Virus record (IMG/VR): IMGVR_UViG_3300047322_001237
Span: 186,001-250,000 of that record
Length of the DNA stretch: 64,000 bases
Reading direction: 5' to 3' (one strand)
In this document: positions 9,809 to 45,697 of the stretch, one piece after another
Position numbering within the stretch: the first letter of the stretch is position 1
Layout of the letters: every line of letters starts with the position of its first letter
Program-made: the position numbers and the translations under genes
The notes under the pieces: generated by a model
Seen by the model: the letters and a program-made list of their open reading frames with translations, nothing else
What the model was told of the DNA's origin: nothing
Databases searched by the model: none

Positions 9809-9852
9809 CCTACCCAAGACGTGTAGAACGTATTAGGTCACCGCACGAGCCG

Positions 9853-12757: not shown

Positions 12758-12830
12758 GGTTTCTACGAACCCAGTGATAACCCACACGCTCAGCCGAAGC
12801 TAAGCGCGTGGGCGAATGGAAAGGAGTCTG

Positions 12831-26270: not shown

Positions 26271-26384
26271 GGTGGTCCAGTCCTGTGAGTATGCGGCGTT
26301 AAACCTCCACCCCAGAAGCCCAATACGTCGGGCCTCCGGAGCGAAGGTCGTCACAGGATGGATGTGCGACTTTTGAAGCGAGAC

Positions 26385-28509: not shown

Positions 28510-29359
28510 GTTTGATGCCTGTTGTTTCCTTGATCTCGCACTTGAGCAACAAGTCACCGATTGCGATGTCGGCCTTGGTCAGGAGATCGAGGTCGTTGAT
28601 GAAGTCCTCGATGTGCGCCTTGATGATGGCGCGAGGATTTTCGTATCCGTCGGTCGAGATGATCGCCATCGACACGAGGTTGGCTGCGATGTTCTGCACC
28701 GGCATCCCTTCGAACGCACGGCCCACGAGATTCGCGTAGATCGTGAACGGATAGCCGAAATCGACCCCGCTCGCGATGTAGTGGTCCATGATGAGGTCGA
28801 GGCCACCGACGTGATTCTTGAAGCGTCGATAGGCGTCGAGGTACTTCTCGCGAACTGTCGAGTGCTCGTCCGGTTCCTCAAGCTCAACGCGCTCGTTTGT
28901 TACTTCGATGATCTTTTGGATCGTCCGCTGACTCACGCCGTGGATGTCCACCAACAGTTCTTCTGCAGTGTGGCTGGTCGTGACGGAGAGGATTTCGGCG
29001 AGCAGCTCTTCCGGGTGCAGATCCATCGCGCAGTGCTGCAGGATGATGCGCGGATCCTGATACGACTCGATCGCGTGAAGTCCGGTGAGCAGCGTGGTCA
29101 GGTGACTGACCCGCGCGTCTTCGCTCGGCTCGACACCCATTGCCTTGAGCAAGGTGACGAGAATCTCCCGTGTCGTGTCGTAGATGTGCTGGACGGTCTG
29201 ACCTTGATCGGTCCCGTCGTCCGTCATCAGGATCTCAACGAAGTCATCTGAATAGTCCGGCAACTGCAGCGCATCGAGTGCCGCGTGTGCTTCTTCAATT
29301 GTTTGGGTGAATTCGGGCGAGGCGGCTCCCGCCAGATAGTCCCGCAGAATGTCAATCAT
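28502..29359 (-). CDS. Conserved jumbo-phage protein (gp79-like by position)
   Basis: Start MIDILRDY; coupled to the vRNAP gene. Confidence 0.65.
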   Translation of the reverse strand: MIDILRDYLAGAASPEFTQTIEEAHAALDALQLPDYSDDFVEILMTDDGTDQGQTVQHIYDTTREILVTLLKAMGVEPSEDARVSHLTTLLTGLHAIESYQDPRIILQHCAMDLHPEELLAEILSVTTSHTAEELLVDIHGVSQRTIQKIIEVTNERVELEEPDEHSTVREKYLDAYRRFKNHVGGLDLIMDHYIASGVDFGYPFTIYANLVGRAFEGMPVQNIAANLVSMAIISTDGYENPRAIIKAHIEDFINDLDLLTKADIAIGDLLLKCEIKETTGIKHG

Positions 29360-31986: not shown

Positions 31987-32346
31987 ATGGAGCGCGGTCC
32001 CGTAGTGCTCAACTCCTCCGACGTGCAGCTGGCGCTGCGCGACTGCTACGAAACCGCGTACCACATCTACGACCATTCGCGATCCGGGCCGAACGACACG
32101 CTCGCGCTGGTCGCAATGCGGGATGCGGAAGATAGTTCGTCGGGTGGTCTTCTGTACGAGCAGATTCGGCGATTCGAAGAGCGGCAAGTCTACAAGCACT
32201 TCGGTCTGAACCTGGTCCAGTTCCTTGAGCTGCCGTCAGACATCGTGCGGTTCGTTCTGGAAATGTCGCTCAAGCGTCAGCAGAACACCGCGAAGACGCA
32301 GGAAGACGTGGTGGATGAAATCCAGCGTATGGCGGAGGGACAATGA
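31987..32346 (+). CDS. Small conserved protein; possibly the C-terminal extension of the upstream protein via -1 frameshift
   Basis: Frame open from 31768 without an earlier start codon; YKHFGLNLVQFLELP resembles the end of tail-chaperone/gp51-type proteins. Confidence 0.6.
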   Translation: MERGPVVLNSSDVQLALRDCYETAYHIYDHSRSGPNDTLALVAMRDAEDSSSGGLLYEQIRRFEERQVYKHFGLNLVQFLELPSDIVRFVLEMSLKRQQNTAKTQEDVVDEIQRMAEGQ

Positions 32347-32789
32347 TCGAGCAGGTTGCAGTGCAAGACATTTTCACTTCTGCCTGTCAGGCGCTGATTG
32401 TGCCGGTGAACGTAGTGGGTACAATGGGCAAGGGTTTGGCGAAAGCCTTCGCTCAGCGGTATCCAGGACTCGAAGCAGCGTATCGAGATGCGTGTCGCCG
32501 GCGAGTGTTTTCAAACCACGGGCTGTTTGTCTGGGAAGCAGGGGACGGGAAACTGATCGTCTGCTTTCCCACCAAGCGTCACTGGGCTAACCCATCTCGA
32601 CTTCCATGGATCGACGAAGGTCTAAAACGACTGGCGCGCGACTTCGAAAAGTATCAGATCCGGTCTATCGCGATGCCGATGATCGGATGCGGTGAGGGTG
32701 GTCTACGTTGGGATGACGTCTATCCCTTGATCGTGGAATGGCTCGAACCGGTGGAACTGCGAGTGCGAGTATGTCTATCGCCGCGGTGA
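32343..32789 (+). CDS. Macro domain protein (Poa1p/DarG-like ADP-ribose hydrolase)
   Basis: DIF...PVNVVGTMGKGLAKAF...FPTK.HW...SIAMPMIGCGEGGLRW. Confidence 0.85.
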   Translation: MIEQVAVQDIFTSACQALIVPVNVVGTMGKGLAKAFAQRYPGLEAAYRDACRRRVFSNHGLFVWEAGDGKLIVCFPTKRHWANPSRLPWIDEGLKRLARDFEKYQIRSIAMPMIGCGEGGLRWDDVYPLIVEWLEPVELRVRVCLSPR

Positions 32790-32809
32790 AACCAAAAAAG
32801 AAGGAAGGT

Positions 32810-32843
32810 CATATCGGGAGGGCACGAGCCCTCCCTTTATGCC
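32810..32843. terminator. Repeated bidirectional terminator element
   Basis: CATATCGGGAGGGC-ACGA-GCCCTCCCTTTATGCC, identical arms to 24254-24287. Confidence 0.75.
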
Positions 32844-32858
32844 GTCTTCTCTTTTTCA

Positions 32859-33093: not shown

Positions 33094-33161
33094 TGTCTGA
33101 GAATTTCTGGAATCCTCGATTGACGGCTTGCTACAATTTCTCTTTCCTCAGGAGTTTTGTA

Positions 33162-33488
33162 ATGGCAAGGCAACCTCGCGCGACACTCGAACAACTACGC
33201 GAACGACTGGCGACGGTGCAGGAACAAATCGCCAAGGAAGAGGAGAAGCGGCGCACGACGGCGCTTGAGGAGATTCATTCGCTGATGTTTCAGCACGGAC
33301 TCACGCCGACTGACATCGAAGCGAAAGGGAAACGAGGGCCGGCGAAGAAGCAATCGAAAGCTGCTTCAAAGACGACGGTCGCGCCGAAGTATCAGGATCC
33401 GAAGACGGGCGCGACGTGGAGCGGTCGCGGTCGCGAACCGCTGTGGATCAAGGGCAAAAAGCGCGAAAAGTTTTTGATCGCGAAGTAA
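33162..33488 (+). CDS. hns: H-NS family nucleoid-associated protein (Burkholderia Bv3F-like)
   Basis: Coiled-coil N-term; VAPKYQDPKTGATWSGRGREPLWI DNA-binding motif; AGGAG RBS; extended -10 TGCTACAAT upstream. Confidence 0.92.
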   Translation: MARQPRATLEQLRERLATVQEQIAKEEEKRRTTALEEIHSLMFQHGLTPTDIEAKGKRGPAKKQSKAASKTTVAPKYQDPKTGATWSGRGREPLWIKGKKREKFLIAK

Positions 33489-33511
33489 GCGAGCATCTTA
33501 GTGATCGCCCG

Positions 33512-34285
33512 TTACGCTGCGGGGTCCGGTTCGTCGTCAGGCGCCGGATCGTTCTTCTCCGTTTGATCCTTAATGTTCGACCCTTTCCTGCTTCTTGGTT
33601 TTGACTTCGCTTTTGATTCAGGTGCACTAGAGGACCTTTCGGAAGCGCCTGCTGACGTGCTCTCGTTCCGTGGCAGTTTCGGGACGAAACCAAGGTAGTC
33701 GCCAATCCGCTGGCGGATACTTTCCTCCAAACCGTGGGAGAGCCCACTGGCGATTCCACAAATCACCATCCCCAATGGCACGGAAATGAGCAAGAGCATC
33801 GTGTCCTTGCCAACGATAAAGCCAGCATACGCGCCAATTGCCGAACCGGAGGCACGCACTAAATTTTCTAATGAGATGCTGCTAAGTGGGGAGCTTTCGA
33901 ATGGAACAATGCTCTCGTAAGACAAGTAATTCACAAACTCCATGGCATGTCCGTAGTTGACCTCTCGAAGAGATCTAGACTCATGTATGACATCCCTTAA
34001 TGCTTTCCTTGGGTCGAGTCCCTTCAAGGGTTGGTCAGCATTAGGATTTGTGATCTCTTTGAAATAGTCGAAACGCCCAATTAGGGCTCTTTTTTGCCAG
34101 TCGAGGCGGTACCGCTTCAGCTCCACGTTTTCATCCCGAATCGGTCGGACGAAACCCTCAGGAAAGCACCGCTGCGGAACGCTGAACAAATGCGCAGACA
34201 GACCACTTTCTTCGTCGTAGATCGTGGTCTCGTAAAACTGAGGCTTCCGATAAAACTTGGGCGTGCCCGGTTGTTCATCAGTCAT
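33512..34285 (-). CDS. Hypothetical membrane-associated protein, lower GC
   Basis: 257 aa with Gly-rich hydrophobic hairpin (AIGAYAGFIVG...LLISVPLGMVICGIASGL). Confidence 0.6.
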   Translation of the reverse strand: MTDEQPGTPKFYRKPQFYETTIYDEESGLSAHLFSVPQRCFPEGFVRPIRDENVELKRYRLDWQKRALIGRFDYFKEITNPNADQPLKGLDPRKALRDVIHESRSLREVNYGHAMEFVNYLSYESIVPFESSPLSSISLENLVRASGSAIGAYAGFIVGKDTMLLLISVPLGMVICGIASGLSHGLEESIRQRIGDYLGFVPKLPRNESTSAGASERSSSAPESKAKSKPRSRKGSNIKDQTEKNDPAPDDEPDPAA

Positions 34286-34327
34286 GGCGACGAATCCCCC
34301 TAGGTAATCGACTTCACATAAATGAAA

Positions 34328-34630
34328 TCAACTCTCTCCAAACGATCTCGCGAGCTTTTCCCATCGCCGCTGCAACAGGTCGATCACTTTTTGGTTACGC
34401 TCTCGCCCGACCGTTGCCATCTCGAAATACTCTTCGATCGATGCTTCCACCTTGGCCGGATCGTCCCCAACGATCTGATGCCAGGGGCCGACGTAGGCCA
34501 CGATCAGGCTGTCATGGAAGATGCAGCGCCCGATCGCCGCGCCAGCGGACATTACGAAGCCTTCATAATGACACCCCTTGAGAGGCCGTCCGTCGGCGGG
34601 CAGGTTTCGAAAATGCAGTTCCACCTTCAT
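34328..34630 (-). CDS. Hypothetical protein
   Basis: 100 aa, protein-like composition. Confidence 0.5.
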   Translation of the reverse strand: MKVELHFRNLPADGRPLKGCHYEGFVMSAGAAIGRCIFHDSLIVAYVGPWHQIVGDDPAKVEASIEEYFEMATVGRERNQKVIDLLQRRWEKLARSFGES

Positions 34631-34818
34631 CGTGCTTTGGGGCTCCGTGTCGAGGGTCGATCCGCCAAGACCTGACTACGGACAGCAAAATGCGTACATG
34701 CGGGGTTGTGCCCCTAACTTTTTACCGGTTTCACGCCGTCGACGCGCCGTCAACTGCGCTCAAATAACCCTCGGCACCTTCGACACTCGTACAACTCAGA
34801 GTCGGTCGTCGCAGGCTC

Positions 34819-35067
34819 CTATTTGCTTAGCGACGAGTTCCGGAACCATCGCGTTTGCGAATCTTGCCGTTGTTTCGAAATTCGTTCGTCCAAAGCTAGC
34901 TGCAGGTCGTCGATGTGCTTTGTGGCGACCGCAAGCGCGGAGGCTGCGGAGCGGTCGGTATTGAAGAGCCGTTTAAGTGTCTCCACACGCTGCTCGCGCG
35001 GGACGGCCCGCGTGTCGGGGTACAGCACGGCGAGGATGTCGATAAACTGCTCAAGGTGATTTGACAT
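34819..35067 (-). CDS. Hypothetical protein
   Basis: 82 aa helical. Confidence 0.45.
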   Translation of the reverse strand: MSNHLEQFIDILAVLYPDTRAVPREQRVETLKRLFNTDRSAASALAVATKHIDDLQLALDERISKQRQDSQTRWFRNSSLSK

Positions 35068-35222
35068 AACTGTTTTTAGCGAACTTTTACGGATTACTTA
35101 CATAAACTTGGCACGTGCAATGCTGAAACGACACGGCGTGACCATGTCACGCGTGGTCTCCTCGTATTGGGCCCGTCGCCAGTCCCCAGCGTGACGGGCA
35201 TTTTTTTTAACGAGCAAGACCG

Positions 35223-35459
35223 CTACACGCGGTAGCCATGGGAGGCTAGCAGTTCCCCGATATTCGCCCCTTCCCACGAGCCGGGCCGACTGTGCACCAT
35301 GGCGGCGTCTTCCGCGAGCATGACGAGCAACGCCTTAGCGTCCAGTGGTCCGTGGGTAGTCGCGCCGTCGCGCTGCTTGTTCACAACGCTGCATGCTTCG
35401 GCGACCATGACCAAGCCGCGGTAGACGTCGTCTCTAAGCTCCATCTCGATCTTGACCAT
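35223..35459 (-). CDS. Hypothetical protein
   Basis: 78 aa, GGAGG RBS. Confidence 0.6.
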   Translation of the reverse strand: MVKIEMELRDDVYRGLVMVAEACSVVNKQRDGATTHGPLDAKALLVMLAEDAAMVHSRPGSWEGANIGELLASHGYRV

Positions 35460-35518
35460 CGGTGCCTCCGCTGCGGGTATCGGCTTTGCTGCGGGCAGAT
35501 TATCAGAGGGAGGTCGTC

Positions 35519-36016
35519 ATGTGCTACGGAAAACCAGAAGAGCTACTTGCTCAGCTTTTGCAAGCGCGGCCATTGAAGCCAAACCAGTACGGCCATACCG
35601 CGCTGGAAGACTTCGAGCATTTCTGTGCTTACTCGGGGTGCGACCCGAATAACACTTGGGCTAAGCTAGCCTTCGTAACAGCGAGTCTTCCACCATCAAC
35701 CCCGAAGGGCCATGCCATGAGCGAAGAACTCGAAAAACAGTGCGCTGACATTAGCATGCTCCTGCGCGATCATCCGCCCGGAACAACGGCCGACATCGCG
35801 GAGTTTTGTATCGTTTATTGGGACGGCGACAGACTCGTCGGTGCGCATCTGTCCGCGGATCACCCGGGCCAACCAGACGAGCCATTTGACGTCGACGAGG
35901 TGTTGTCAGAGATTCCGGAATGCGTCGACGAATGGCTGAAGGCACCGAAGTACTCCTTCAGGCCGACAATCGTCGAATGGATGAAGGACTCGCCGCCGCG
36001 TGAATCGGGGGCGTGA
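35519..36016 (+). CDS. Hypothetical protein
   Basis: Start moved to MCYGKPEE with GGAGG RBS; a second start is possible at MSEELEK. Confidence 0.5.
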   Translation: MCYGKPEELLAQLLQARPLKPNQYGHTALEDFEHFCAYSGCDPNNTWAKLAFVTASLPPSTPKGHAMSEELEKQCADISMLLRDHPPGTTADIAEFCIVYWDGDRLVGAHLSADHPGQPDEPFDVDEVLSEIPECVDEWLKAPKYSFRPTIVEWMKDSPPRESGA

Positions 36017-36022
36017 GCTTCC

Positions 36023-36664
36023 GTGAGCCTGCCGATAATCGAGCCGGGCGACATGATGCACGGCGTGCGAGTACGCGCGCCCTTCTCTCGCGATGGCTGG
36101 ATCTTTGAGATCAAATACGACGGGTATCGCGCCTTTATCCGCAAGCAAGCTGACCGCGTCGAACTTCTATCTCGCCACGGCACGGTCATGAATGCAGTCT
36201 TTCCGGACATCATCGAGGCCGTTAGCGCGGTGCCCGGAAACTTCATTTGGGACGCCGAGCTCACGGTCGACGAGAGTAACGGACGTTCTTCGTTCGAGGG
36301 CCTTCAACAGCGAGGGCGCTTACGCGTTCCGATGCGTGTCCGTGCAGCCGCGCGCGAGCGCCCTGCCCGTCTCTACGTCTTCGATATCCTCGCCTCCGAA
36401 GATGACGACCTACGACAACTCCCGCTCGACCAACGAAAGGAAATCCTCAGAGACACGTTCGATGACAACTCGGTGCTGATCTACGCAGGGGGAATCATCG
36501 GCGCCGGTGAATGGGTCTTCGAGCAGGCGCAGAAACTCGACCTCGAGGGCGTCATGGCGAAACGCCTCGACTCGCTCTACGTGGCGGGTCGCTCCCATGC
36601 ATGGCAGAAGGTCAAGAACCTAGACTACAGCCGCCCTGCTGCTCTCGGTATCGGTCGCCGGTAA
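36023..36664 (+). CDS. ATP-dependent DNA ligase, adenylation domain only
   Basis: Motif I EIKYDGYR, III WDAEL, IIIa YVFDIL, IV EGVMAK, V WQKVK; no OB domain. Confidence 0.85.
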   Translation: MSLPIIEPGDMMHGVRVRAPFSRDGWIFEIKYDGYRAFIRKQADRVELLSRHGTVMNAVFPDIIEAVSAVPGNFIWDAELTVDESNGRSSFEGLQQRGRLRVPMRVRAAARERPARLYVFDILASEDDDLRQLPLDQRKEILRDTFDDNSVLIYAGGIIGAGEWVFEQAQKLDLEGVMAKRLDSLYVAGRSHAWQKVKNLDYSRPAALGIGRR

Positions 36665-36666
36665 CA

Positions 36667-37380
36667 CTACGCGCCGGTCGCCGCGAGGATCGATTGCATC
36701 GCCGTTGGCGCAAGCGTCCTCGCAGGCTTGCTGGAACGTCCATAGGGACTGAGCAAGATCGGCGACGGCTTCAGTGCTAAATCGAAAGGCTCGACACCGA
36801 TGGGACCTTTTCGCTTCACGATGTTGACCGAGACGCCGTCGGCTGCTGGCCGGATGGCGAGTCGCAGCGACGCGGGCGATGTGTCCTGCTGCACGGCAAG
36901 CGGACGGAAAACGAAAAACAGCATCTCCGACGACTGCGAGACCAGTAACAGACGCCGCAGCGATTCGGGACGCATGTGCTGCTGCCACAGTAAGACCGCC
37001 CCGCATGTATTCGCCTTCAGTATCTGCTCAGTCGACCAGAGCACGTCCGCCGTCTTTTCGACCTCCAGCCGAATCAACTTCTCCGGCGGAACGCCGATAT
37101 ACGCGAGTCCCTGGACGTTCGGAACATGTGGCGGTTTGATTAATACAACAGGCCGTTTCGCCACCGTGGTCAGCGCCGGCTGCAACATGCGCACTTCGCC
37201 GATCCCTGGCTGTTGGACTAGCAGTTCGACCAAGGTGCCAATCGGCCACCCCCCGCCAGGCAATTCCGCCGATAGCCGGTCGTAGCCGGTGTCGACCGTG
37301 CGCCCTGCCCTTCTTGCCAACTGGTTACCGCGCCAGAGGGACGGGTGGATTTCTTCAATGTCCTTGGGAAGTGCTGACAT
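36667..37380 (-). CDS. imuA: ImuA/SulA-like RecA-fold protein
   Basis: HPSLWRG...TGYDRLSAELPGGGWP...ELLVQQPGIGE...LWSTEQILK...LRRL; start MSALPKD. Confidence 0.85.
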   Translation of the reverse strand: MSALPKDIEEIHPSLWRGNQLARRAGRTVDTGYDRLSAELPGGGWPIGTLVELLVQQPGIGEVRMLQPALTTVAKRPVVLIKPPHVPNVQGLAYIGVPPEKLIRLEVEKTADVLWSTEQILKANTCGAVLLWQQHMRPESLRRLLLVSQSSEMLFFVFRPLAVQQDTSPASLRLAIRPAADGVSVNIVKRKGPIGVEPFDLALKPSPILLSPYGRSSKPARTLAPTAMQSILAATGA

Positions 37381-37395
37381 CGTCGCGCCTAAACA

Positions 37396-37411
37396 CTGTA
37401 TAGATGTACAG
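37396..37411. promoter_or_regulatory. LexA (SOS) box
   Basis: CTGT-ATAGATGT-ACAG, canonical CTGT-N8-ACAG, 15 nt upstream of the imuA start. Confidence 0.88.
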
Positions 37412-37834
37412 TATCCTACACCCTTTTTCGCGGCGCATCGTCTACCACTTAGGGAACCGCTTGGAGAGACAGTTAGTTGCGTGGTGAAAACCACAAAAAA
37501 CGTATCATTCATTACGTTTTGGCGCCGTGACTGTCTGCCAACCTCGGCCGACTTCCGGATCACGTCAAAGAACGCTTGCCAGCGGCCACTTAGTTCTTTT
37601 TCCGTGAAACATTCCCCGCGAGCTGCCGCCGACGCCTTGATTTAGAACAAGTTGGCGCCTTCGAAAATTTGTCCCGAGTGTTTCACGGGACGTCATTCGA
37701 ACTTAAGACTACTTCGAGGTTCCACGCCCTCTTCCCCGCCCTGCTTGACCGACAAAAAGTGACAGTACAGCGAAGTATACTTGCTCTGCCCTTGTTTACA
37801 AGCTAGAGTTCGACACAATTCGGTCGTGCGCCGC

Positions 37835-37874
37835 ATTCTTCGGTCGAAGGTGATTTTTCGAAAAACCGAAGAAT
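37835..37874. promoter_or_regulatory. Inverted repeat upstream of parA (candidate ParA operator)
   Basis: ATTCTTCGGT-N20-ACCGAAGAAT, overlapping the palindrome TTTTTCGAAAAA. Confidence 0.5.
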
Positions 37875-37896
37875 CCACAACAAAGGGGAACCTCTC

Positions 37897-39099
37897 GTGA
37901 ATGCAAGCACTCTGCTCGCCAGCGGCCTGCCGCCGGCGCTTGACTACGCCGCGTCCATGGACACATTGGCTGATGTGTCCGCCCGTGCCTCGGGTGTTCT
38001 AAATCAGATCCGCGATCGGATGCTGGAACCATATCCGCGCAAACGCCCGCCCACGTTCACGAGCGCACAGGTGGCCGGCCTGTGCGGACTTGAAAAAATG
38101 CGTTTCCAGTATCTGACTACGAAAGGCGATCTCCCCACCGGCACGTCGATTAAAAATGGCAAGAGCAAAGTCTTTACGTTGGAAGAGACACTACGGTATA
38201 TCCGGGCTGTCGGCAATCGCCCGCCGCGACCAGAGAACGCTCCCGGCAAAGTTGTGACGGTGGCCAACTTCAAAGGCGGTGTGGCTAAGACTACGACGGC
38301 CGTCTCGCTCGCTCAGGGACTCACCTTACGCGGTCGTAAGGTTCTCGTTATCGACTGTGATCCCCAAGGCACCGCTACGCAGTTATGCGGCTTCTCGCCC
38401 GAAACGGAAATAGGCGAGGAGATGACGCTCATGCCTTTGATCTACGGCGATGAAACGAGACTGGACTACGCAGTCCAACAAACCTACTGGCAGGACCTAG
38501 ACCTGGTCCCGGCGTCTTCCGGTCTCTTTAGCGCTGAGTTTCATATTCCGGGCAAGCTGGCCACCGACCACAAGTTCGAATTCTGGAACATCTTGAATCA
38601 GGGCCTCGAAGGCCTCAAAGACAAATACGACGCCATCGTCATCGACACTCCGCCATCTCTAAGTTATCTGACGATCAATGCGTTGATGGCGGCGAACGGA
38701 CTATTGATGCCCTGCCCGCCCGAGGGGCTCGACTTTGCCAGCTCCACTCAGTTCTGGTTCCTCTTCACCGAAATGTCGAGGCACGTTCCAGCAATGCGTG
38801 AGACGAAAGACTTCGATTTCGTCAATGTCGTGCTCACGAAATCGAAGAGTGACGACCTTTCCGGCGTTGTACGGGGCTGGCTGCAAAAGGCCTACGGAGA
38901 TCGAGTCCTTCCGTATGAGATTCCCGACTCCGTCGTCCCGAAGAGCGCATCTGCTCAACTCTCTACCGTCTACGACCTTACCAAGCCCGAGGGCAGCGTG
39001 GCAGCCTACACCCGCTTCAAGGATCCGATGGATCAGTTGGTGAGGCACATCGACTCCCAGTTTGTACAGGCTTGGGCGTCTTCCATGTTGGAGGTCTAA
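37897..39099 (+). CDS. parA: ParA partition ATPase (type Ia, N-terminal HTH extension)
   Basis: Deviant Walker A NFKGGVAKTT, DCDPQG, DTPPSL; GTG start with GGGG RBS. Confidence 0.95.
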   Translation: MNASTLLASGLPPALDYAASMDTLADVSARASGVLNQIRDRMLEPYPRKRPPTFTSAQVAGLCGLEKMRFQYLTTKGDLPTGTSIKNGKSKVFTLEETLRYIRAVGNRPPRPENAPGKVVTVANFKGGVAKTTTAVSLAQGLTLRGRKVLVIDCDPQGTATQLCGFSPETEIGEEMTLMPLIYGDETRLDYAVQQTYWQDLDLVPASSGLFSAEFHIPGKLATDHKFEFWNILNQGLEGLKDKYDAIVIDTPPSLSYLTINALMAANGLLMPCPPEGLDFASSTQFWFLFTEMSRHVPAMRETKDFDFVNVVLTKSKSDDLSGVVRGWLQKAYGDRVLPYEIPDSVVPKSASAQLSTVYDLTKPEGSVAAYTRFKDPMDQLVRHIDSQFVQAWASSMLEV

Positions 39100-40094
39100 T
39101 GCGCGCCGCTCAAAGACTTAGTGAAAAGATTGGTGACATCGACATCCCAGAACCCGGTCAATCGCCGGCGGCCGGTGATCCGTTTCGTCCAAGGACGGCA
39201 CCAGGTGGAGCGCTCGCCTTTCAGCATGCAATGCGCGAGAAGCAGGCCGAGCTCGACGCGATGTCCGCACAGCTGGCCGAACTGCAAGCTCAGAAGCAGA
39301 CGAACTCGCCCAGCGGCGTCGAGATTCCCCTCGACCAACTGCATGAAGTCGCAGGTCGCAGACGCTACATGCCGCCGGAAAAGTACAATGAATTGCGGGA
39401 AAACCTGCGGAACAACAAGCTGATTCAGCTGCCCGTCATTCTGCCACGTGCAGAAGGTGGCTTCGAAATACAGTCGGGACATCACCGGATCGACGCTTAT
39501 CGGGAACTCGGGCGTTCGACCATTCGCTGTGTTCTGGGTGACGCGACGGGCGATGAAGCTGACGACGGCGCGTTCTGGGCCAATCTGATGCAGTCGGACC
39601 TGACTGACTATGAGAAGTACGTTGGACTGACGCGCGTACATTCGAAACATCCGGAATTGGGCCAAGTCGAGCTAGGCGAGCTCGTCGGCATTAGCACTTC
39701 CCACCTCAACGCCCTGCTCTCTTTCGGTCGTTTGCCTGAGCAGGCCCGCGCGATTCTCGATACCAATAAGGCGATCATGGGCGCGAACGCGGCCGCGGCT
39801 TTTGCGGCTATCGCGGAGGCCGGCAAGGCGGAGCGGGTTGTGGAAGCGGTACGACGTCTCTCCGAGCGGGAGCTAGATCAGGCGCAGGCGGTGAAGTTTG
39901 CAAAAGCCGTTGAGACGCCCAAGGCAACGAAGCCGGCTGCTGAGTCGTACAAGGTGAAGACCGGAAAGAGTACGTGGTGCGATGTGCGCAAGACGAAAAA
40001 CATCATGCGCATCGAGTTCCAGTCCGAAGAGGTGGCCAATGCCGTCCAAGAAGCCATCAAGCAAACCCTCGAGGCGCTCGCCGCAAAGTCCTAA
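39099..40094 (+). CDS. parB: ParB partition protein
   Basis: TAATG overlap with parA; ParB N-domain (...FEIQSGHHRIDAY...) and HTH (ELGELVGISTSHLNALL). Confidence 0.93.
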   Translation: MRAAQRLSEKIGDIDIPEPGQSPAAGDPFRPRTAPGGALAFQHAMREKQAELDAMSAQLAELQAQKQTNSPSGVEIPLDQLHEVAGRRRYMPPEKYNELRENLRNNKLIQLPVILPRAEGGFEIQSGHHRIDAYRELGRSTIRCVLGDATGDEADDGAFWANLMQSDLTDYEKYVGLTRVHSKHPELGQVELGELVGISTSHLNALLSFGRLPEQARAILDTNKAIMGANAAAAFAAIAEAGKAERVVEAVRRLSERELDQAQAVKFAKAVETPKATKPAAESYKVKTGKSTWCDVRKTKNIMRIEFQSEEVANAVQEAIKQTLEALAAKS

Positions 40095-40162
40095 ACGCTA
40101 AGTGCTTGATTCTTTTGATTTCCTTAGTACGGAAAAAGGAGACGGCAGTGAAATAGCTGCTA

Positions 40163-40307
40163 GAAACACGAAGGCCCCCAGCTGGAAACTGAGGGCCTTC
40201 GCATAAGTGGGCTTGGCTGGAAACCGTCGCTCACTACACTCCCAAGCTGGAAACTTGGAAGGGTACTTCGTCAACCCCGAGTGTAGCGAATAGCGATCGA
40301 CAGTCAA
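40163..40307 (-). ncRNA. Candidate counter-transcribed RNA of the rep leader, with its promoter
   Basis: Minus-strand TTGACT-16-TACACT (40307-40280); transcript would fold CCAAG and GAAGGCCC hairpins and end at GTGTTTCT. Confidence 0.55.
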
Positions 40308-40345
40308 GCAAATTCAATCCATTTTTGAGAAATGGACCGCTCGAC

Positions 40346-41434
40346 ATGTCTATCGCGCAACAGCTCGTTGCTGGCGAGGGTGAAACACACCCCGACGATT
40401 CAGCAGCCCTCACCGCTTTCCGGTGTGACTCGACAAACCTGCCTTGGGTCATCTTCCGGGCTGCGTTCCGTGCAGCACACATTGAGGAGATCCCTCCTCG
40501 CGCACGTGCGGTTCTTTCCGCCCTCGCCCGCACCGTCGACGCCGCCAAGCCGTTCGCCGCGATCTTCGCTCGTCGTGAACTGCTCACAGGACGCGCACTG
40601 CAATCCATGCGCACCTTCTACCGCAGCCTCGATGACTTGGAGTCCGCCGGTCTAATCGATCGCCGCGCTCAATCCCGCTACGTTGAAGCCGGTCTCTTCG
40701 GTCGTGCCTACATCCACCTCACCGCGCGAGCAGCCGAGCTTCTAGGGCTCGTTGAGTCGATGCAACCGCCCTCACCTGAGCCCGTCGAATCTTCGCTTCC
40801 GCATCCGTCTGCCAACTTGGCAGACGGTGGAATATATAAGGATCTAAGCCCTTCTGTTTTTCAAAAGAGACAACCGGGGCAAGTGCCTGAGGATCTCCAG
40901 CGTCTGCGGTCCCTGGGTTTTTTTGATTTCTTGATTTTCAAACTCATGCGGGAAGCGCGTGAGCATGGCAAACGTCTCTCGGATGTCGTGGAAGCAACAT
41001 GGGACCACCTGAAGCTCGCCAAAGCCCCAATCAACTACCTGCGGAGTCTGCTGCGGGGAACGGTTGATTTCGCTCACCAACTGCGCGCCAGGATTAACGT
41101 CAAAGCCGAGGAGCAGGCTCGGGTGAAGCGCACCTTGGAAGCCGATCAGGTAGCCCGTCAAAGCGCCGGCAAAACGTTCCTAGACGCCTCGGGGGCACGC
41201 AAGTACGTGATCGATGCCGACGGCGAGAACATGGTCGTCTACAACCGTGACGAAGGCATTGGTCGACAAGCCGCGGGTTGGAAAGAAGGTTTTGCTGCAG
41301 CGCTCGCTCGAGGTCAGATCCGTGCGGCGAGCAGCTACGTGCAGCCGGAGCAGGGCAGGGAACGTCCGCCAGTTACAGCACAGGTTCGGGAACACATCGC
41401 GGGACTGCGCAGCCTGCTGGGAGCTCGTCGCTAG
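40346..41434 (+). CDS. Replication initiator of Burkholderia chromid/megaplasmid type (winged-helix, often annotated replication protein O)
   Basis: NLPWVIFRAA...RARAVLSALARTVD...IFARRELL...RTFYRSLDDLE...GLFGRAYIHLT; third gene of the parA-parB-rep cassette; start may be TTG 40325. Confidence 0.8.
   Translation: MSIAQQLVAGEGETHPDDSAALTAFRCDSTNLPWVIFRAAFRAAHIEEIPPRARAVLSALARTVDAAKPFAAIFARRELLTGRALQSMRTFYRSLDDLESAGLIDRRAQSRYVEAGLFGRAYIHLTARAAELLGLVESMQPPSPEPVESSLPHPSANLADGGIYKDLSPSVFQKRQPGQVPEDLQRLRSLGFFDFLIFKLMREAREHGKRLSDVVEATWDHLKLAKAPINYLRSLLRGTVDFAHQLRARINVKAEEQARVKRTLEADQVARQSAGKTFLDASGARKYVIDADGENMVVYNRDEGIGRQAAGWKEGFAAALARGQIRAASSYVQPEQGRERPPVTAQVREHIAGLRSLLGARR
40805..40827. repeat. 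23-bp interrupted palindrome inside rep (candidate oriV)
   Basis: CCGTCTGCCAA-C-TTGGCAGACGG followed by AT-rich AATATATAAGG...TTTTTCAAAAG. Confidence 0.55.
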
Positions 41435-41467
41435 TCAGGACTGCTTAGTTTTTGAGCAAAAAAAAAA

Positions 41468-41487
41468 GACGGGTCCGAAGACCCGTC
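41468..41487 (-). terminator. Intrinsic terminator between rep and lipoprotein
   Basis: GACGGGTC-N4-GACCCGTC followed by a long T-tract on minus strand. Confidence 0.8.
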
Positions 41488-41492
41488 AAAAG

Positions 41493-42251
41493 TCAGTTGG
41501 CGAGCTGCCAGCCGTTATCCGTCAACAGCATGTAATACGTTGCCGTGTAACTGTAGCGCACGTCGTCGCTGTATTGACTCGGTTTAAGGTCAGTTGCCAG
41601 CATTGTACTAACCAGATTCGGACTGACATTCGGACATTCGGCGACAATATTTCGAGAAAACACGGATCGGATATTCTGTGCTTCTACCACTTTGTCGTGA
41701 TACGCCGTTGTCGTATCCCATGCCTTCAGCGCAGCGGCCTCAACGTCAGGATGCTGCTTGAGGTACATGTCCGAGTAGACATTGAGGGGATAGCTCACGG
41801 CGGCAGCGAGTCGGTCGTCACCTGGCTGCGACTCGCGAATCTGCGTGTTATAGGCGGCCTGCTGATCCTCAGAGAGGGACGCCCGAAGCGCATCGACCCC
41901 ATCTGACACGTCTTTTGCGTATTTCTGCAGCGACGCATCCGCCTCGTCCCGTGCCTCTTTATGCGATTTAAGATACTCATCCAAGTCGGTCAAGTATCGG
42001 ACGTTGGCACGTGCGGGTTTCATCACCACTTCGGCAGCCATCTGCATTTCGTAATGTCTGTCGTCGACCTTCACGCCATTGACCTTGTCGAACTTGGTTA
42101 TCTTGAAGAGATCACAGTCGGCTATATGGAGATTCTGCTCGACGCCCTTGCGTACATCCGACTCGGACGGGGACTGAGAACAAGCAGCCAAGGTGGCAAC
42201 CACTGAGGCGCACAGAGCCAGCCGGCCCACGCCGGTGCGCTGAATAAACAT
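41493..42251 (-). CDS. Lipoprotein
   Basis: MFIQRTG...LALCASVVATLAAC lipobox; downstream of promoter motif at 42344. Confidence 0.75.
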   Translation of the reverse strand: MFIQRTGVGRLALCASVVATLAACSQSPSESDVRKGVEQNLHIADCDLFKITKFDKVNGVKVDDRHYEMQMAAEVVMKPARANVRYLTDLDEYLKSHKEARDEADASLQKYAKDVSDGVDALRASLSEDQQAAYNTQIRESQPGDDRLAAAVSYPLNVYSDMYLKQHPDVEAAALKAWDTTTAYHDKVVEAQNIRSVFSRNIVAECPNVSPNLVSTMLATDLKPSQYSDDVRYSYTATYYMLLTDNGWQLAN

Positions 42252-42343
42252 GATTCTTTTCCTTTCTAATTGAAAACGTTTGCCCAGACGGGCAGGGGAG
42301 ACGGGAGTCGGAAGCCGCCGCATCTTAGACGAATATCGGCAGC

Positions 42344-42351
42344 GTGATATA
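42344..42351 (-). promoter_or_regulatory. Candidate phage early promoter TATATCAC
   Basis: YATATSAC-N5-YGA family, just after terminator 42381-42400. Confidence 0.6.
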
Positions 42352-42425
42352 ACTCTTTAGGAAAAAGACAAAAGAAAAACGGCCTGGGAAAACCCAGGCC
42401 GCTATGCCCTCAAGAGGGAAGGGGA

Positions 42426-42956
42426 TCAGTCGAAGCTATAACGCACGACTTCCTTGAGCGGGAGAATGCCGATCATCTTGCCGGACCCGCAACCCGCTAC
42501 CTCGCGAAAGAGGCGCACGTAGTTGGTGTCGATGTCCTCTTCCTCGCACCATGCGAAAAAGGAGATTGGATCGATCAGGCCAACGTTGCGCTCAGACGTC
42601 CGCCATTCGCTCAGATCGCGACGGACACGATGAGCGAGCGTACTGCCGATCGAGATCTTGCGACCGTCGAACGTGGTGAGTTCATCCATAGCGTCCAGAC
42701 TGCCTTCCACAGGAAGCACGCCATTGATCAAGCAGCAAGCCATGAGGCCCGACCAGACTTTTAGCTTTAAGTAGCGAGCGACCAACAGAATTTGATCGGC
42801 TGCAGATTGCACGTTATCAATACGCGCAACTGAAACGGACGGAACGAGTACGACACCTTTTGCGTCCGTCGTTTTTTCTGCAAGGTATTCGCGAAGTTCG
42901 ACGAACGCCCGTTGGTTTGCGGCGAGGCTGTCCTCGCCAAATGAAGAATGGCCCAT
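42426..42956 (-). CDS. Hypothetical protein
   Basis: 176 aa co-oriented with neighbours. Confidence 0.6.
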   Translation of the reverse strand: MGHSSFGEDSLAANQRAFVELREYLAEKTTDAKGVVLVPSVSVARIDNVQSAADQILLVARYLKLKVWSGLMACCLINGVLPVEGSLDAMDELTTFDGRKISIGSTLAHRVRRDLSEWRTSERNVGLIDPISFFAWCEEEDIDTNYVRLFREVAGCGSGKMIGILPLKEVVRYSFD

Positions 42957-42968
42957 GGTATCTGTACC

Positions 42969-43289
42969 TTATTTGATCTCATCGCCCATGCAGGCAACGA
43001 GCGATGGATGGATGAATGCGAGCTGTGTCGTGGTGAAAAGAATGTCGCGTTGGTCGTGTTTGCCGCTTTGCGTGGCCGTTGAGATCAAAGACTCCGAAAG
43101 GTCCTCCACGAGCACGAGATCCTTTTCAGACCAGACAAGCTTGTAGACTTCTGTTTGTTCCTTGATGTAATTGGTGAGTACCGACAGATACTCGGCCGCA
43201 GCTTTGATCTCAGCCGCGCAGGTCGGCGGATCCAGAAGCAGCATATTCAACACGGTGCGCTGTGTAGCGCTGAACCGCTTTTCACGCAT
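42969..43289 (-). CDS. Hypothetical protein
   Basis: 106 aa, GAGAG RBS, promoter motif at 43394. Confidence 0.6.
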   Translation of the reverse strand: MREKRFSATQRTVLNMLLLDPPTCAAEIKAAAEYLSVLTNYIKEQTEVYKLVWSEKDLVLVEDLSESLISTATQSGKHDQRDILFTTTQLAFIHPSLVACMGDEIK

Positions 43290-43393
43290 GATTTTACTCT
43301 CTCAGGTTGAGCCGTTCTCGGGATGCTACTAATGGTCGATGCCACCGACCCCTCAAGCAAGCGGGACTTCAATACTCCGCGTTGCTCAAGGGC

Positions 43394-43401
43394 GTGATAT
43401 A
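43394..43401 (-). promoter_or_regulatory. Candidate phage early promoter TATATCAC
   Basis: YATATSAC-N5-YGA family. Confidence 0.6.
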
Positions 43402-43487
43402 AGGCTGAAACTTTTTAGGATCGGCAAAAAAAAAAACTAAACGGCATAACTGCCAGAGGTTTCCCCCTGGCAGCGACAACCACGGCG

Positions 43488-43937
43488 CTACGCCGCTTTC
43501 TGCACCAGCTCCGGCGCGCGGTGGGTACCGCGGTTCGGCAGCTTTTCTTCGACCAGGAACGTCTGGATGTCCTGGCATGCTTGATACAGTTCCGACAACT
43601 CGTACTCGTATCCGGTCAGGAATTCGAGTCCGTCTTCGAGGCACTGGTGGTGCTTGAAGAGGTCGGTCGTTTGCTCATAGTCCGTCAAAAAGACACTGAA
43701 CACATTGCGATCCGTCTCGCAGATCCAGGCATTGCGGCAGCCGAAATGACGGCCTCCCGGATGCTTCTCGACGAACATCTTTAAACGCGTGACGCGCATG
43801 GTCCGCTCAGTGTGCTGAGTGATATGCGTGTTGCCACGGGGGGACCCCTGATGTTGGAACATCAGATACAGCATTTCAACGATAGCGGTCCCGACGGGGG
43901 TGATGCGATTAACGACAACGCGATTCATGCTTGACAT
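43488..43937 (-). CDS. Hypothetical protein
   Basis: GAGGA RBS at 43937; alternative start at 43799. Confidence 0.55.
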   Translation of the reverse strand: MSSMNRVVVNRITPVGTAIVEMLYLMFQHQGSPRGNTHITQHTERTMRVTRLKMFVEKHPGGRHFGCRNAWICETDRNVFSVFLTDYEQTTDLFKHHQCLEDGLEFLTGYEYELSELYQACQDIQTFLVEEKLPNRGTHRAPELVQKAA

Positions 43938-44101: not shown

Positions 44102-45631
44102 TTACATTGCATTGGGGATAACGACTGACGAGTACGCCAGTGCGCGAGTTCTAAGCAATTCCTGATTCTTTTGCTGATACGCCATGTGCTTCTCGACGTC
44201 GGCGCAGTAAAAGGAAATGCATTCAGGCGTCTTTCCCGTCTTCAGCTTTCGAGTCCGGCCAAACATCTGCAGGATCTGCTGCTGACTGGAGATCGCCACG
44301 GACATGATGTTCGTGGTGAGGTTCGGGATGTCGACCGCGGTGCCTGCCGAGATCGGTGTCGTGACGCGGATGTCCGCTTCGATACAGTTCTCGAACGGGT
44401 CCTCTTCCACGTAACGACGCACGTCCAGGTTCGGATACTGCTTCTGCAGGAACTCCGTCACGAGCGTGCAGAATTCGATCGACGCGCAGAAAATGATCGC
44501 CTTCTCAGTCGGCTGATACGTCCTCAGGTACTTCGCCTTAAGCACCTGGTCAATCAGGTTGAGGTAGTTCTTCAGGACAGGCGGGTTCTTCATCAGGTAC
44601 TTCTCGAACACATGGTTCGAGTAGTTACCTTGCATGTCCTTGGTGCGGATGGCGTCAGGCCGCGCAATGCGGTAGAACAGGGCGGTCGCATTGGTGTAGC
44701 GGTCGTATGCCGGACCCTTATGGCGGTCAGGGGACGGATACGCGATCTCATACATCCGCTGGATGAACGCATCTTCCTTGTCGAGCGTTGCGGACAACGA
44801 CAGCGACTTATGGCAGTGCGTGTAGAGATCCACCAGGAAGTTCAGGTGAAAATCCTGGTGCACTTCGTCGATGAGGCGGAACCCCGATCGCAGCGTTTGC
44901 ATCAACTCCGATGGACGACATGCATAGCCCATCTCAAGCGTCTGGTCGCCGTACTCCTTGTAGAGTTTGAACCAGTTCTGGATCGTCTTGTTACTGATCA
45001 GGACGATCTTGCTCGTAAGCCGACCTTCGAGCGCCATCTCCAGAAGCGCCATCAGATGATCGCTTCCGCGGATGATCATCAGGTCTTCAATCGCGATGTC
45101 GAACACTTCGCGGATTTCGTCACGCCACTTCTCCAGATACATCGGCTTCACGATGATCACCGGAGCAAGGCGCGTCTTCGCCACAGCAAAGAGCGACGTT
45201 ACGCCTTTACCTTTACCCGTCTGAAACTCGATCAGCTTCGAGACCGAACCGTCCTCCTTGAGGACGTAGTCGACGCCTTCATCCTGATAGTCGTGCAGGT
45301 TCCAGCTGTCGAAGATCTTGAAGTCAACTTCTCGAACCGGCGGCAACTCGACCTGCTCGATGTCGACGAGCGAATCCTTCAGGTTGTGAAACGCGAGGTA
45401 TTCCTTGAATTTCTTCAGGACGTTGATGTGATAGCGATACTCACCAGTGTCAGCACAATGCGTCGCATAGACCGGAGGCTTCGGAGGCGGCTTTGTCGAA
45501 TAAGGACTCGGCTTGGCGCGAAGGGGCTGCACGAACTGCTTGGTGAATCCGAGCACCGCGGGCATGGCGCGCGGCGTCACCTTGCTGACGACGAAGTGAT
45601 GCGAATGAAGACGAATCAGAAGTTCAGCCAT
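44102..45631 (-). CDS. SF2 (DExH) helicase (phiKZ gp75-like)
   Basis: QTGKGK, DEVH, SAT, QMFGRTR motifs; start MAELLIRL. Confidence 0.9.
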   Translation of the reverse strand: MAELLIRLHSHHFVVSKVTPRAMPAVLGFTKQFVQPLRAKPSPYSTKPPPKPPVYATHCADTGEYRYHINVLKKFKEYLAFHNLKDSLVDIEQVELPPVREVDFKIFDSWNLHDYQDEGVDYVLKEDGSVSKLIEFQTGKGKGVTSLFAVAKTRLAPVIIVKPMYLEKWRDEIREVFDIAIEDLMIIRGSDHLMALLEMALEGRLTSKIVLISNKTIQNWFKLYKEYGDQTLEMGYACRPSELMQTLRSGFRLIDEVHQDFHLNFLVDLYTHCHKSLSLSATLDKEDAFIQRMYEIAYPSPDRHKGPAYDRYTNATALFYRIARPDAIRTKDMQGNYSNHVFEKYLMKNPPVLKNYLNLIDQVLKAKYLRTYQPTEKAIIFCASIEFCTLVTEFLQKQYPNLDVRRYVEEDPFENCIEADIRVTTPISAGTAVDIPNLTTNIMSVAISSQQQILQMFGRTRKLKTGKTPECISFYCADVEKHMAYQQKNQELLRTRALAYSSVVIPNAM

Positions 45632-45697
45632 AATGAACCTGCATAGAACGGAGGAAGGGGATTGCGCGGACGGTTGCAATCCCCCGCACTACGATGC

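Follow-up and report, generated by a model that had tools for sequence, protein, structure and literature searches.

We analyzed a stretch of 64,000 nt (in the following, the window), i.e., positions 186,001 to 250,000 of the IMG/VR record IMGVR_UViG_3300047322_001237. Its central part, from about 33,100 to about 42,400, encodes an H-NS family protein, a short ATP-dependent DNA ligase, an ImuA homologue with a LexA box, overlapping parA and parB genes and a rep gene, while both flanks consist of intact chimallivirus genes. The features at and next to this island are the following.

32343-32789 (+): macro-domain protein (DarG-like), the last phage-backbone gene left of the island
33162-33488 (+): H-NS family protein, the first island gene
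33512-35459 (-): small island genes of unknown function (257, 100, 82 and 78 aa)
35519-36016 (+): conserved 165-aa island protein of unknown function
36023-36664 (+): short ATP-dependent DNA ligase (adenylation domain only, 213 aa)
36667-37380 (-): ImuA homologue (237 aa) without imuB or dnaE2
37395-37412: LexA (SOS) box ACTGTATAGATGTACAGT, 15 nt upstream of the imuA start
37603-37687: inverted pair of TGTTTCACG (half of the canonical parS) upstream of parA, a candidate centromere or operator
37781-37874 (+): parA control region with the promoter-like TTGCTC-17-TAGAGT (37781-37809) and the inverted repeat ATTCTTCGGT-N20-ACCGAAGAAT (37835-37874)
37897-39099 (+): ParA, type Ia partition ATPase (400 aa)
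39099-40094 (+): ParB (331 aa), overlapping the parA stop by 1 nt
40165-40307 (-): candidate antisense (counter-transcribed) RNA gene with promoter at 40307-40280 and a transcript of about 40273-40165 with two hairpins and a U-tail
40346-41434 (+): Rep, winged-helix protein and putative replication initiator (362 aa)
40805-40945: cis element inside rep, i.e., a 23-nt palindrome (40805-40827) plus a stretch with suppressed synonymous change, a candidate origin or Rep site
41468-41487 (-): intrinsic terminator hairpin with a T10 tail, ending the 276-aa gene and flanking rep
41493-42323 (-): 276-aa lipoprotein-like gene, variable, the right end of the island
42426-43937 (-): three small phage-backbone genes (176, 106 and 149 aa)
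44102-45679 (-): phage helicase, the first core gene right of the island
62513-64000 (-): chimallin (nuclear shell protein), cut by the window end, 655 aa in full

Within the flanks, chimallin was identified by phrog_4795 (3e-83) and P0241 with PF25677, and the helicase by phrog_16 (7e-30). RNA polymerase beta-type subunits lie at 27187-28557, 45698-47689, 47741-49990 and 60545-62074, the DNA polymerase at 21949-23766 and head or virion proteins at 1612-12787. The core genes in the window are full length and match PHROG profiles end to end, and the endolysin is intact. The macro-domain protein matches PF01661 and PADLOC DarG (7.6e-47) and has two paralogues in Burkholderia phage FLC9. The three small genes between the island and the helicase have homologues in a relative without the cassette (L104) as well as in two further compared sequences (L009 and L010).

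ParA hits AAA_31 (2e-37) and the RepA-type TIGR03453 (2.8e-63), and ParB hits parB_part (8e-10) and ParB_N (5e-4). H-NS is supported by Histone_HNS (3.5e-13), the ligase by DNA_ligase_A_M (3.2e-30) and ImuA by NF033429 (7.7e-64, 214.9 bits against a cut-off of 150). Rep is 84% identical to proteins annotated as 'Replication protein O' that follow parAB on Caballeronia plasmids. However, it has no Pfam, NCBIfam or PDB relative beyond a winged helix, i.e., only its N-terminal wHTH is recognizable by fold, such that its initiator role rests on gene context and database names. No family hits were obtained for the small genes at 33512-35459.

The sequence-level elements of the original prediction, i.e., a coupled parA-parB-rep cassette between chimallivirus core blocks with plausible cis signals (a ctRNA promoter and an intragenic palindrome), are confirmed, except that the claimed phage-type promoters could not be verified. 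The predicted ctRNA promoter is TTGACT-16-TACACT on the minus strand at 40307-40280, and both hexamers lie in blocks that are invariant across 9 replicons. The intragenic palindrome is perfect over 23 nt. Terminator-like hairpins are present at 32795-32856, 41468-41487, 42378-42403 and 43442-43455. On the other hand, a simple sigma-70 scan shows no enrichment in the island (5 sites against 4.5 expected). The island is also wider than the predicted range of 33100-41450, because the 276-aa gene is non-phage as well. The predicted chromid/megaplasmid type of the replicon is fair, since the nearest ParA in PLSDB (67%) is found on 0.6-1.9-Mb Caballeronia replicons and Rep occurs on plasmids of 244 kb to 1.95 Mb. 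That the replicon is complete is not proven, given that no iteron array or mapped origin was found and Rep has no experimentally characterized homologue.

We next compared the locus with related genomes. The window is collinear gene by gene with the cultured phage FLC9 (LC667451) over 21.9-32.8 kb and 44.1-64 kb, where FLC9 has only 2 kb in the slot for which the window shows 11.3 kb. The same island was found in the same slot in five independent genomes, i.e., the window, a second metagenome contig (UViG_3300046463_001154), Paraburkholderia sp. BCC1886, Paraburkholderia sp. HC6.4b and the IMG isolate genome 2756170199. Caballeronia arationis LMG 29324 probably has it too. These phages form one clade on the helicase tree (SH-aLRT 100), although one clade member (L104) lacks the island. 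Three of the five genomes, and probably also C. arationis, come from assemblies of cultured isolates, which argues for stable carriage. The contig sizes of 278,988, 282,688 (HC6.4b) and 286,074 bp (BCC1886) for members with the cassette and 284,983 bp for L104 look like whole separate replicons, albeit without inspection of the contig ends. In BCC1886 and HC6.4b, chimallin is encoded on the same contig as Rep. In contrast, no PLSDB plasmid record encodes chimallin.

The individual island genes are conserved to different degrees. H-NS is present at the same place in UViG_3300046463, BCC1886 and C. arationis but absent from FLC9 and L104. The region 33512-35200 is missing in UViG_3300046463, while the 100-aa gene is 78% identical in C. 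arationis contig 34. The 165-aa protein is 76% identical in UViG_3300046463 and partly present in C. arationis contig 144. The ligase is of similar short size (219-231 aa) in BCC1886 and C. arationis contig 144. ImuA is 81% identical in UViG_3300046463, 78% in C. arationis contig 144, and a pseudogene in plasmid L004. The 276-aa protein is only 26% identical in UViG_3300046463, while its C-terminus matches sequence downstream of rep in the C. novacaledonica plasmid. Island genes are under purifying selection with dN/dS values of 0.03 (imuA), 0.07 (ligase), 0.12 (165-aa protein), 0.14 (rep) and 0.21 (H-NS). ParA and ParB are 90% and 85% identical to those of the HC6.4b phage, respectively, whereas ParA is only 45% identical to that of its nearest phage relative and at most 67% to any PLSDB plasmid. 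That is, parAB modules are swapped between close phages and shared between distant ones, which is the pattern expected under incompatibility pressure. Relatives furthermore carry toxin-antitoxin and TIR/PIN genes in or near the slot, i.e., cargo typical of resident elements.

Conservation also extends to the nucleic acid level. The LexA box is the only site in 64 kb (against 0.08 expected) and is conserved at the same position in five compared sequences (L027, L030, L102, L004 and L031). The two copies of TGTTTCACG are the only ones in the window, and both are conserved in HC6.4b and IMG 2756170199. The parA control region is nearly invariant in the three phages that share this parAB type. For the candidate antisense RNA, 97% of cells are paired and 9 of 20 pairs show double changes. 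None of 500 shuffles reaches the score and slid controls collapse, while no Rfam match was found. The arms of the intragenic palindrome are kept in all 11 rep genes, where HC6.4b has compensatory arm changes that cost S>C and D>H. The suppression of synonymous change is reflected in 15 of 31 against 15 of 130 single-codon sites (p=1.7e-5).

Given these observations, we consider with moderate confidence that the window is part of a ~279-kb genome from a Caballeronia/Paraburkholderia-associated chimallivirus clade that carries a ~9.3-kb plasmid-maintenance island, and that this supposedly strictly lytic family thus probably has a phage-plasmid lineage. Direct evidence for episomal state, copy number, circularity or inheritance is lacking, such that the following mechanism is inferred. 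Host RNA polymerase would express the island genes, and Rep would recruit the host replisome to an origin in or next to rep. The antisense RNA would limit Rep and keep the copy number low, as in repABC plasmids, while ParABS would segregate the copies, i.e., the phage genome would be inherited as a low-copy extrachromosomal prophage. Following established phiKZ biology, the lytic program needs the virion-delivered phage RNA polymerase and would thus be silent by default in daughter cells, which H-NS may reinforce. This leaves unexplained how a plasmid-state genome would start the lytic cycle without virion RNA polymerase. More speculatively, the SOS box ties the island to DNA damage and may feed into induction. 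We found no prior report of such a lineage.

It is possible, though unlikely, that the phage is instead a persistent or carrier-state virulent phage whose island serves the lytic cycle, e.g., with ParAB positioning genomes or nuclei and Rep recruiting host replication proteins. Chimalliviruses without any plasmid genes also turn up in isolate assemblies (10.1101/2024.12.31.630880; PMC12768965), i.e., presence in isolates alone does not prove plasmid maintenance. Furthermore, PhuZ is dispensable in some genera (PMC12768965), such that another positioning system is conceivable, and no repressor or integrase was seen in the window. On the other hand, rep, its antisense RNA and its intragenic cis element are shared almost unchanged with ordinary conjugative Caballeronia plasmids, and low-copy control is pointless in a lytic burst. 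FLC9 and L104 manage without the island, and the parAB swapping fits incompatibility avoidance between co-resident replicons.

More doubtful is that the elements are domesticated or decaying phage-derived megaplasmids that no longer make virions. Here, P. adhaesiva carries related phage genes on a 492,647-bp contig, interrupted by a Tn3 transposase and an integrase, and a Cupriavidus megaplasmid holds a 221-aa fragment of the phage RNA polymerase beta subunit. This is opposed by the full-length core genes and intact endolysin of the window, by a dN/dS of core genes against the sister phage of 0.04-0.12 and by genome-length contigs that stay within 279-286 kb.

We consider it improbable that the island is recently captured passenger DNA, i.e., a plasmid fragment picked up by recombination without function for the phage. 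In favor of this, GC3 of island genes (0.57-0.71) is lower than that of core genes (0.75-0.83), Rep is highly similar to plasmid Rep, imuA stands alone and the ligase lacks its other domains. However, the island is present across a clade whose core proteins have diverged to 46-64% identity, it shows low dN/dS and conserved cis elements, and the short ligase and lone imuA are themselves conserved in size and sequence in all members. Finally, a wrong join by the metagenome assembler is effectively refuted, even though the window comes from a metagenome and the region is broken over several contigs in C. arationis, since it would need two false junctions exactly inside a syntenic slot and the same architecture was assembled independently in another metagenome and in three isolate genomes by different projects.

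With regard to known systems, the window shares with FLC9 and other Chimalliviridae (phiKZ, RP12/RP31, Goslar) chimallin, split virion and non-virion RNA polymerase subunits, DNA polymerase, helicase and head proteins. Protein identity to FLC9 is only 40-60% (41% for the helicase, gp368), FLC9 has four small genes in place of the 9.3-kb island, and no phage record in INPHARED has this Rep. Persistent virulent jumbo phages/BAPS in Enterobacteriaceae isolates (Seoulvirus, Goslarvirus, Bapsvirus) are likewise chimallin-encoding genomes recovered as separate contigs in assemblies of colony-purified bacteria. Those phages were screened and found to lack plasmid replication and partition genes (10.1101/2024.12.31.630880) and their mode of persistence is unknown, while this clade carries a full par-rep module.

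Phage-plasmids (P1, N15, SSU5-like) also combine a tailed-phage genome with an own plasmid replication initiator and a parAB system, and related members carry addiction or defense cargo. A LexA-controlled gene of the translesion-synthesis family is present here. Here, however, the phage part is a ~280-kb nucleus-forming chimallivirus with its own RNA polymerases, from a family treated as strictly virulent. No repressor or immunity region was identified, the replicon is of a Burkholderiaceae parA-parB-ctRNA-rep type, and no ParA or Rep match to any known phage-plasmid exceeds 33%.

The repABC replicons of Alphaproteobacteria show the same gene order of partition ATPase, centromere-binding protein and initiator, an antisense RNA encoded between the second and third genes and a conserved cis element inside the initiator gene. 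The best NCBIfam hit for ParA is repABC RepA, but the score is below the equivalog cut-off (214 against 348 bits). Rep shows no similarity to RepC, there is no RP-C domain, no Rfam ctRNA family matches, and the hosts are Betaproteobacteria. The parAB-rep replicons of Caballeronia/Burkholderia plasmids and chromids (e.g., Burkholderia sp. THE68 p2, C. novacaledonica and C. arationis plasmids) have the same three-gene order, a Rep of 64-84% identity and the same parB-rep leader, antisense promoter and intragenic palindrome, and in some of them imuA with an SOS box lies upstream of parA. Those replicons carry type IV secretion or chromid cargo instead of a phage, and their ParA is only 41-49% identical (67% for chromids), whereas the phage-borne ParAs group with each other.

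The window has a G+C content of about 58% and corresponds to positions 186,001-250,000 of contig Ga0495680_0000001 (278,988 bp) from JGI metagenome 3300047322, which is also held as IMGVR_UViG_3300047322_001237. Between 33.1 and 42.4 kb we find the following island genes.

33162-33488, plus strand: H-NS family protein
33512-35459, minus strand: several small ORFs of unknown function
35519-36016, plus strand: conserved 165-aa protein
36023-36664, plus strand: 213-aa ATP-dependent DNA ligase, adenylation domain only
36667-37380, minus strand: ImuA homologue, above the NCBIfam cut-off
37897-39099, plus strand: ParA
39099-40094, plus strand: ParB, starting on the last base of the parA stop
40346-41434, plus strand: Rep, putative replication initiator, 362 aa
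41493-42323, minus strand: 276-aa lipoprotein-like gene

PADLOC and Pfam searches gave nothing for the small island ORFs. Both flanks consist of chimallivirus genes.

1.6-12.8 kb: virion and internal head proteins
21949-23766: DNA polymerase
25458-26354: endolysin
27187-28557: RNA polymerase beta-type subunit
44102-45679: helicase
right of the helicase: three more RNA polymerase beta-type subunits and an SbcD-like nuclease
62513 to the window end: chimallin

The original prediction, i.e., a parA-parB-rep cassette with an antisense (ctRNA) promoter and an intragenic palindrome between chimallivirus core blocks, is therefore correct.

With regard to the phage part, chimallin matches phrog_4795 at 3e-83, and the full-length 655-aa protein (P0241) carries PF25677 and has hundreds of homologues. 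The four RNA polymerase beta-type subunit genes match phrog_2962, 3015, 3295 and 2987 with E-values from 1e-141 to 1e-228, and an Rpb2_6 domain was detected as well. Virion and internal head proteins, endolysin and polymerases are all full length within the window. The macro-domain protein at 32343-32789 matches the macrodomain of the DarG antitoxin (PADLOC, 7.6e-47) and has two paralogues in Burkholderia phage FLC9. It is a plausible phage counter-defence against DarT-type DNA ADP-ribosylation.

We also compared the window with FLC9 (321.8 kb), the closest cultured phage, which shows 40-60% protein identity. Window 21.9-32.8 kb and 44.1-64 kb are gene-by-gene collinear with FLC9, while the 11.3 kb between them correspond to only 2 kb of small genes in that phage. 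The FLC9 record lacks a family-level taxonomy line; its own chimallin homologue is 46% identical. A misassembly would need two false joins inside this slot. Given this synteny and the four independent assemblies summarized below, we rejected an assembly chimera.

Independently assembled genomes with the same architecture.
UViG_3300046463_001154 (79.8 kb), another metagenome: core proteins 84-97% identical; H-NS, 165-aa protein, ligase, imuA, parA, parB and rep in the same order
Paraburkholderia sp. BCC1886, CAAJGK010000011.1 (286,074 bp), isolate: macro, H-NS, ligase, imuA-like, ParA, ParB, Rep, helicase and RNAP; chimallin on the same contig
Paraburkholderia sp. HC6.4b, JACHDC010000009.1 (282,688 bp), isolate: ParA, ParB, Rep, helicase and RNAP; chimallin 20 locus tags from Rep
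IMG 2756170199 (138,880-bp contig), IMG isolate-genome id, strain not identified: related to HC6.4b, 84% nucleotide identity in the cassette

The type strain Caballeronia arationis LMG 29324 is a probable further case. It carries a sister phage with a 92% identical chimallin on contigs of 143.7 and 74.1 kb, both of which break inside the slot. A 14.3-kb contig of the same assembly (contig 144) holds ligase, imuA, parA, parB and rep, and its ParA groups with the phage-borne ParAs. However, a search for end overlaps among the three contigs (34, 144 and 11) found none, such that it stays open whether contig 144 belongs to the phage. Furthermore, the exact ParA sequence of the window (37897-39099) is also recorded on a 43,484-bp contig of a Logan assembly of a public sequencing run, i.e., the same or a near-identical phage was sequenced elsewhere.

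To assess the distribution of the island, we fetched about 85 chimallivirus helicase loci from IMG/VR and metagenomes. Only the window contig and its closest relative showed the island within 10 kb. On a helicase tree, the window phage, the four genomes listed and the C. arationis phage form one clade (SH-aLRT 100) together with one island-less metagenome contig (L104, 284,983 bp), while FLC9 lies elsewhere. The island therefore looks like a trait of one Caballeronia/Paraburkholderia clade, with one loss or a sister lineage that never had it. Comparison with L104 and with C. arationis places the island boundaries at about 33,100 and 42,400. Megablast of the island and of the right flank against phage and plasmid collections found only the rep gene in plasmids, and tblastn of Rep against phages found nothing. 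No PLSDB plasmid encodes chimallin.

The island genes show signs of selection. Between the window and its sister phage, dN/dS is 0.14 for rep, 0.03 for imuA, 0.07 for the ligase, 0.12 for the 165-aa protein and 0.21 for H-NS, compared to 0.04-0.12 for core genes. On the other hand, third-position G+C of the island genes and the adjacent small genes (33100-43300) is 0.57-0.71, against 0.75-0.83 in the phage core genes. That is, the island keeps a foreign codon signature despite being old in the clade.

The partition genes behave as modules. The two sister phages share only 45% (ParA) and 48% (ParB) identity, whereas the window shares 90% and 85% with the much more distant HC6.4b phage. UViG_3300046463, BCC1886 and C. 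arationis contig 144 form a second ParA group at 68-72%. Sampled conjugative plasmids are at most 49% identical in ParA, and the best PLSDB hit is 67%, on Caballeronia chromids. In contrast, Rep is 83-84% identical to Caballeronia plasmid Rep, 78% to the sister phage, 70% to BCC1886 and 61% to HC6.4b. Exchange of partition specificity between related replicons, and of Rep with resident plasmids, is what co-resident low-copy replicons do.

The relatives carry ParE/Phd, PIN, TIR and AAA genes in or near the slot, i.e., cargo typical of resident elements. In detail, the slot next to the macro gene collects defence-like or addiction genes (locus L099, 12474-15036; L103, 653-3510; L098, 4269-4791 and 12509-13840), namely TIR-DnaB_C and DUF72 in C. 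arationis, PIN and TIR_2 in HC6.4b, and an AAA ATPase in BCC1886, where ParE/Phd is also found beside the DNA polymerase. Homing-endonuclease-type genes are inserted among the RNA polymerase genes of relatives (GIY-YIG/NUMOD3 in C. arationis, L099 7476-8216; HNH in Paraburkholderia adhaesiva, L101 772-1626) but are absent from the window.

In P. adhaesiva (JAJEJQ010000004.1, 492,647 bp), homologues of the phage RNA polymerase subunit and neighbouring genes (36-62% identity) are interrupted by a Tn3 transposase and an integrase, and are followed by H-NS, a cold-shock protein, a GAAD/GASH/DO-GTPase cluster and ParD. This may be a cointegrate with a megaplasmid or a decaying relative. On the closed 545-kb megaplasmid NZ_CP017750.1 of Cupriavidus sp. 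USMAA2-4, a 221-aa 'hypothetical protein' (360600-361265) is 44% identical to residues 343-504 of the phage RNA polymerase beta subunit and sits next to a RelE/ParE toxin and integrase remnants, which looks like a scar of past chimallivirus-megaplasmid recombination. Finally, the 222,441-bp record NZ_CP134650.1 of Enterobacter ludwigii, deposited as a plasmid, has a distant match to the same subunit (23% identity over 44% of the query) and may be a jumbo phage filed as a plasmid.

We next investigated cis elements. Upstream of parA, the three phages with the same parAB type share the only two copies of TGTTTCACG in the window, a parS-like half-site, which form an inverted pair at 37603-37611 and 37679-37687. 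They also share a promoter-like TTGCTC-17-TAGAGT and an inverted repeat, ATTCTTCGGT-N20-ACCGAAGAAT, just before the start codon. A canonical LexA box, ACTGTATAGATGTACAGT, at 37395-37412 is the only one in 64 kb, against 0.08 expected. It lies 15 nt upstream of the lone imuA (no imuB or dnaE2), which is the most constrained island gene, and is conserved in the other phages and plasmids that carry imuA. It may link the element to DNA damage.

The parB-rep spacer is conserved in all 11 replicons compared, both plasmids and phages. On the minus strand, TTGACT-16-TACACT lies in invariant blocks and is followed by two hairpins and a U-tail. Here, 97% of cells are paired and 9 of 20 pairs show changes on both sides, while 0 of 500 shuffles reach the covariation score and sliding the partners destroys the signal. 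This fits a ~105-nt counter-transcribed RNA controlling rep, as in repABC plasmids. Rfam gave no hit at gathering or permissive thresholds, i.e., the RNA is not homologous to the Rfam ctRNA families, and no tRNA was found.

Inside rep, the 23-nt palindrome at 40805-40827 keeps its arms in all 11 genes, and HC6.4b carries complementary substitutions in both arms that change two amino acids. Across codons 154-200, 15 of 31 amino-acid-invariant codons use one codon in all ten sequences, against 15 of 130 elsewhere (p=1.7e-5). Since the palindrome follows Rep type rather than ParB type, we read it as a Rep site or origin element, not as parS. A search for iterons yielded only three short GCTGGAAAC repeats, which proved to be parts of the RNA hairpins, and no 19-22-bp iteron array was found. 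Cumulative GC skew gave no usable origin signal because gene orientation confounds it, and the simple sigma-70 and terminator scan of the island was not above the shuffled expectation.

The assignment of Rep as initiator is less well supported. The family (window 40095-41434 and the loci L003-L005 and L029-L031; 'Replication protein O' in NCBI names, with 485 or more homologues in Caballeronia, Paraburkholderia, Burkholderia and Cupriavidus) has no Pfam, NCBIfam or PDB relatives. Its AlphaFold model (pLDDT 74) shows a predicted N-terminal winged helix, with only weak MarR-like matches, and a confident C-terminal domain without significant fold match, and a PDB profile search gave nothing. The putative initiator role thus rests on the constant position of rep after parAB, on database names, and on the absence of another recognised replicon type on plasmids such as THE68 p2, for which MOB-suite reports none. 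Both this Rep family and its antisense RNA are uncharacterised families in their own right.

Taken together, we consider it likely, although not certain, that the island serves plasmid-type maintenance. Evidence for stable extrachromosomal inheritance is only indirect, i.e., genome-length contigs in assemblies of cultured isolates without read depth or contig ends. In a further-reaching reading, which we consider about as likely as not, this would be the first temperate (plasmid-prophage) lineage within the nucleus-forming Chimalliviridae. That is, a ~280-kb phage would replicate and segregate as a low-copy plasmid from a host-read parAB-ctRNA-rep module, its lytic programme would stay silent by default because it depends on a virion-delivered RNA polymerase absent from daughter cells, and a LexA-controlled island gene would link induction to DNA damage.

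Chimalliviruses are the textbook case of obligately lytic, host-independent phages and are favoured for therapy for that reason. Two recent large surveys report chimallin-encoding jumbo phages as separate contigs in assemblies of colony-purified Enterobacteriaceae and call them persistent or carrier-like, without being able to explain how they persist; one of them screened for plasmid replication and partition genes and found none (10.1101/2024.12.31.630880; PMC12768965). Our literature searches combining chimallin, Chimalliviridae or jumbo phage with phage-plasmid, temperate, Caballeronia or Paraburkholderia returned nothing describing a chimallivirus with a plasmid replicon. A clade with a conserved, selected plasmid replication and partition module would give a concrete, testable mechanism for persistence and would extend phage-plasmids to the largest and most autonomous phages.

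Finally, we compared the module with known replicon and partition systems. ParA corresponds to the long type Ia form, i.e., it comprises 400 aa with a KGGVAKTT motif (deviant Walker A) at residues 126-133 and an AAA_31 domain at 118-282. For ParB, ParB_N scores 20.4 bits, below the 26.3 cut-off, and TIGR00180 (8e-10) is also below its cut-off, while PF02195 is among the JGI precomputed annotations. Burkholderia secondary replicons are known to use parAB plus a plasmid-type rep, sometimes with parS sites inside genes (PMC4948915). With regard to repABC replicons, a candidate counter-transcribed RNA between the second and third genes is present. In contrast, no RP-C domain of a RepC initiator was hit even at E=10 for five family members, and ParA scores 214.1 bits against TIGR03453, below the RepA equivalog cut-off of 348.45. 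Rep_3, TrfA or related initiator domains were not found either. The candidate element appears to work like a phage-plasmid with a repABC-like control layout but by these tests is not a member of repABC or of the iteron Rep families, and it differs from known phage-plasmids in occurring in a phage family where such a module is unexpected.
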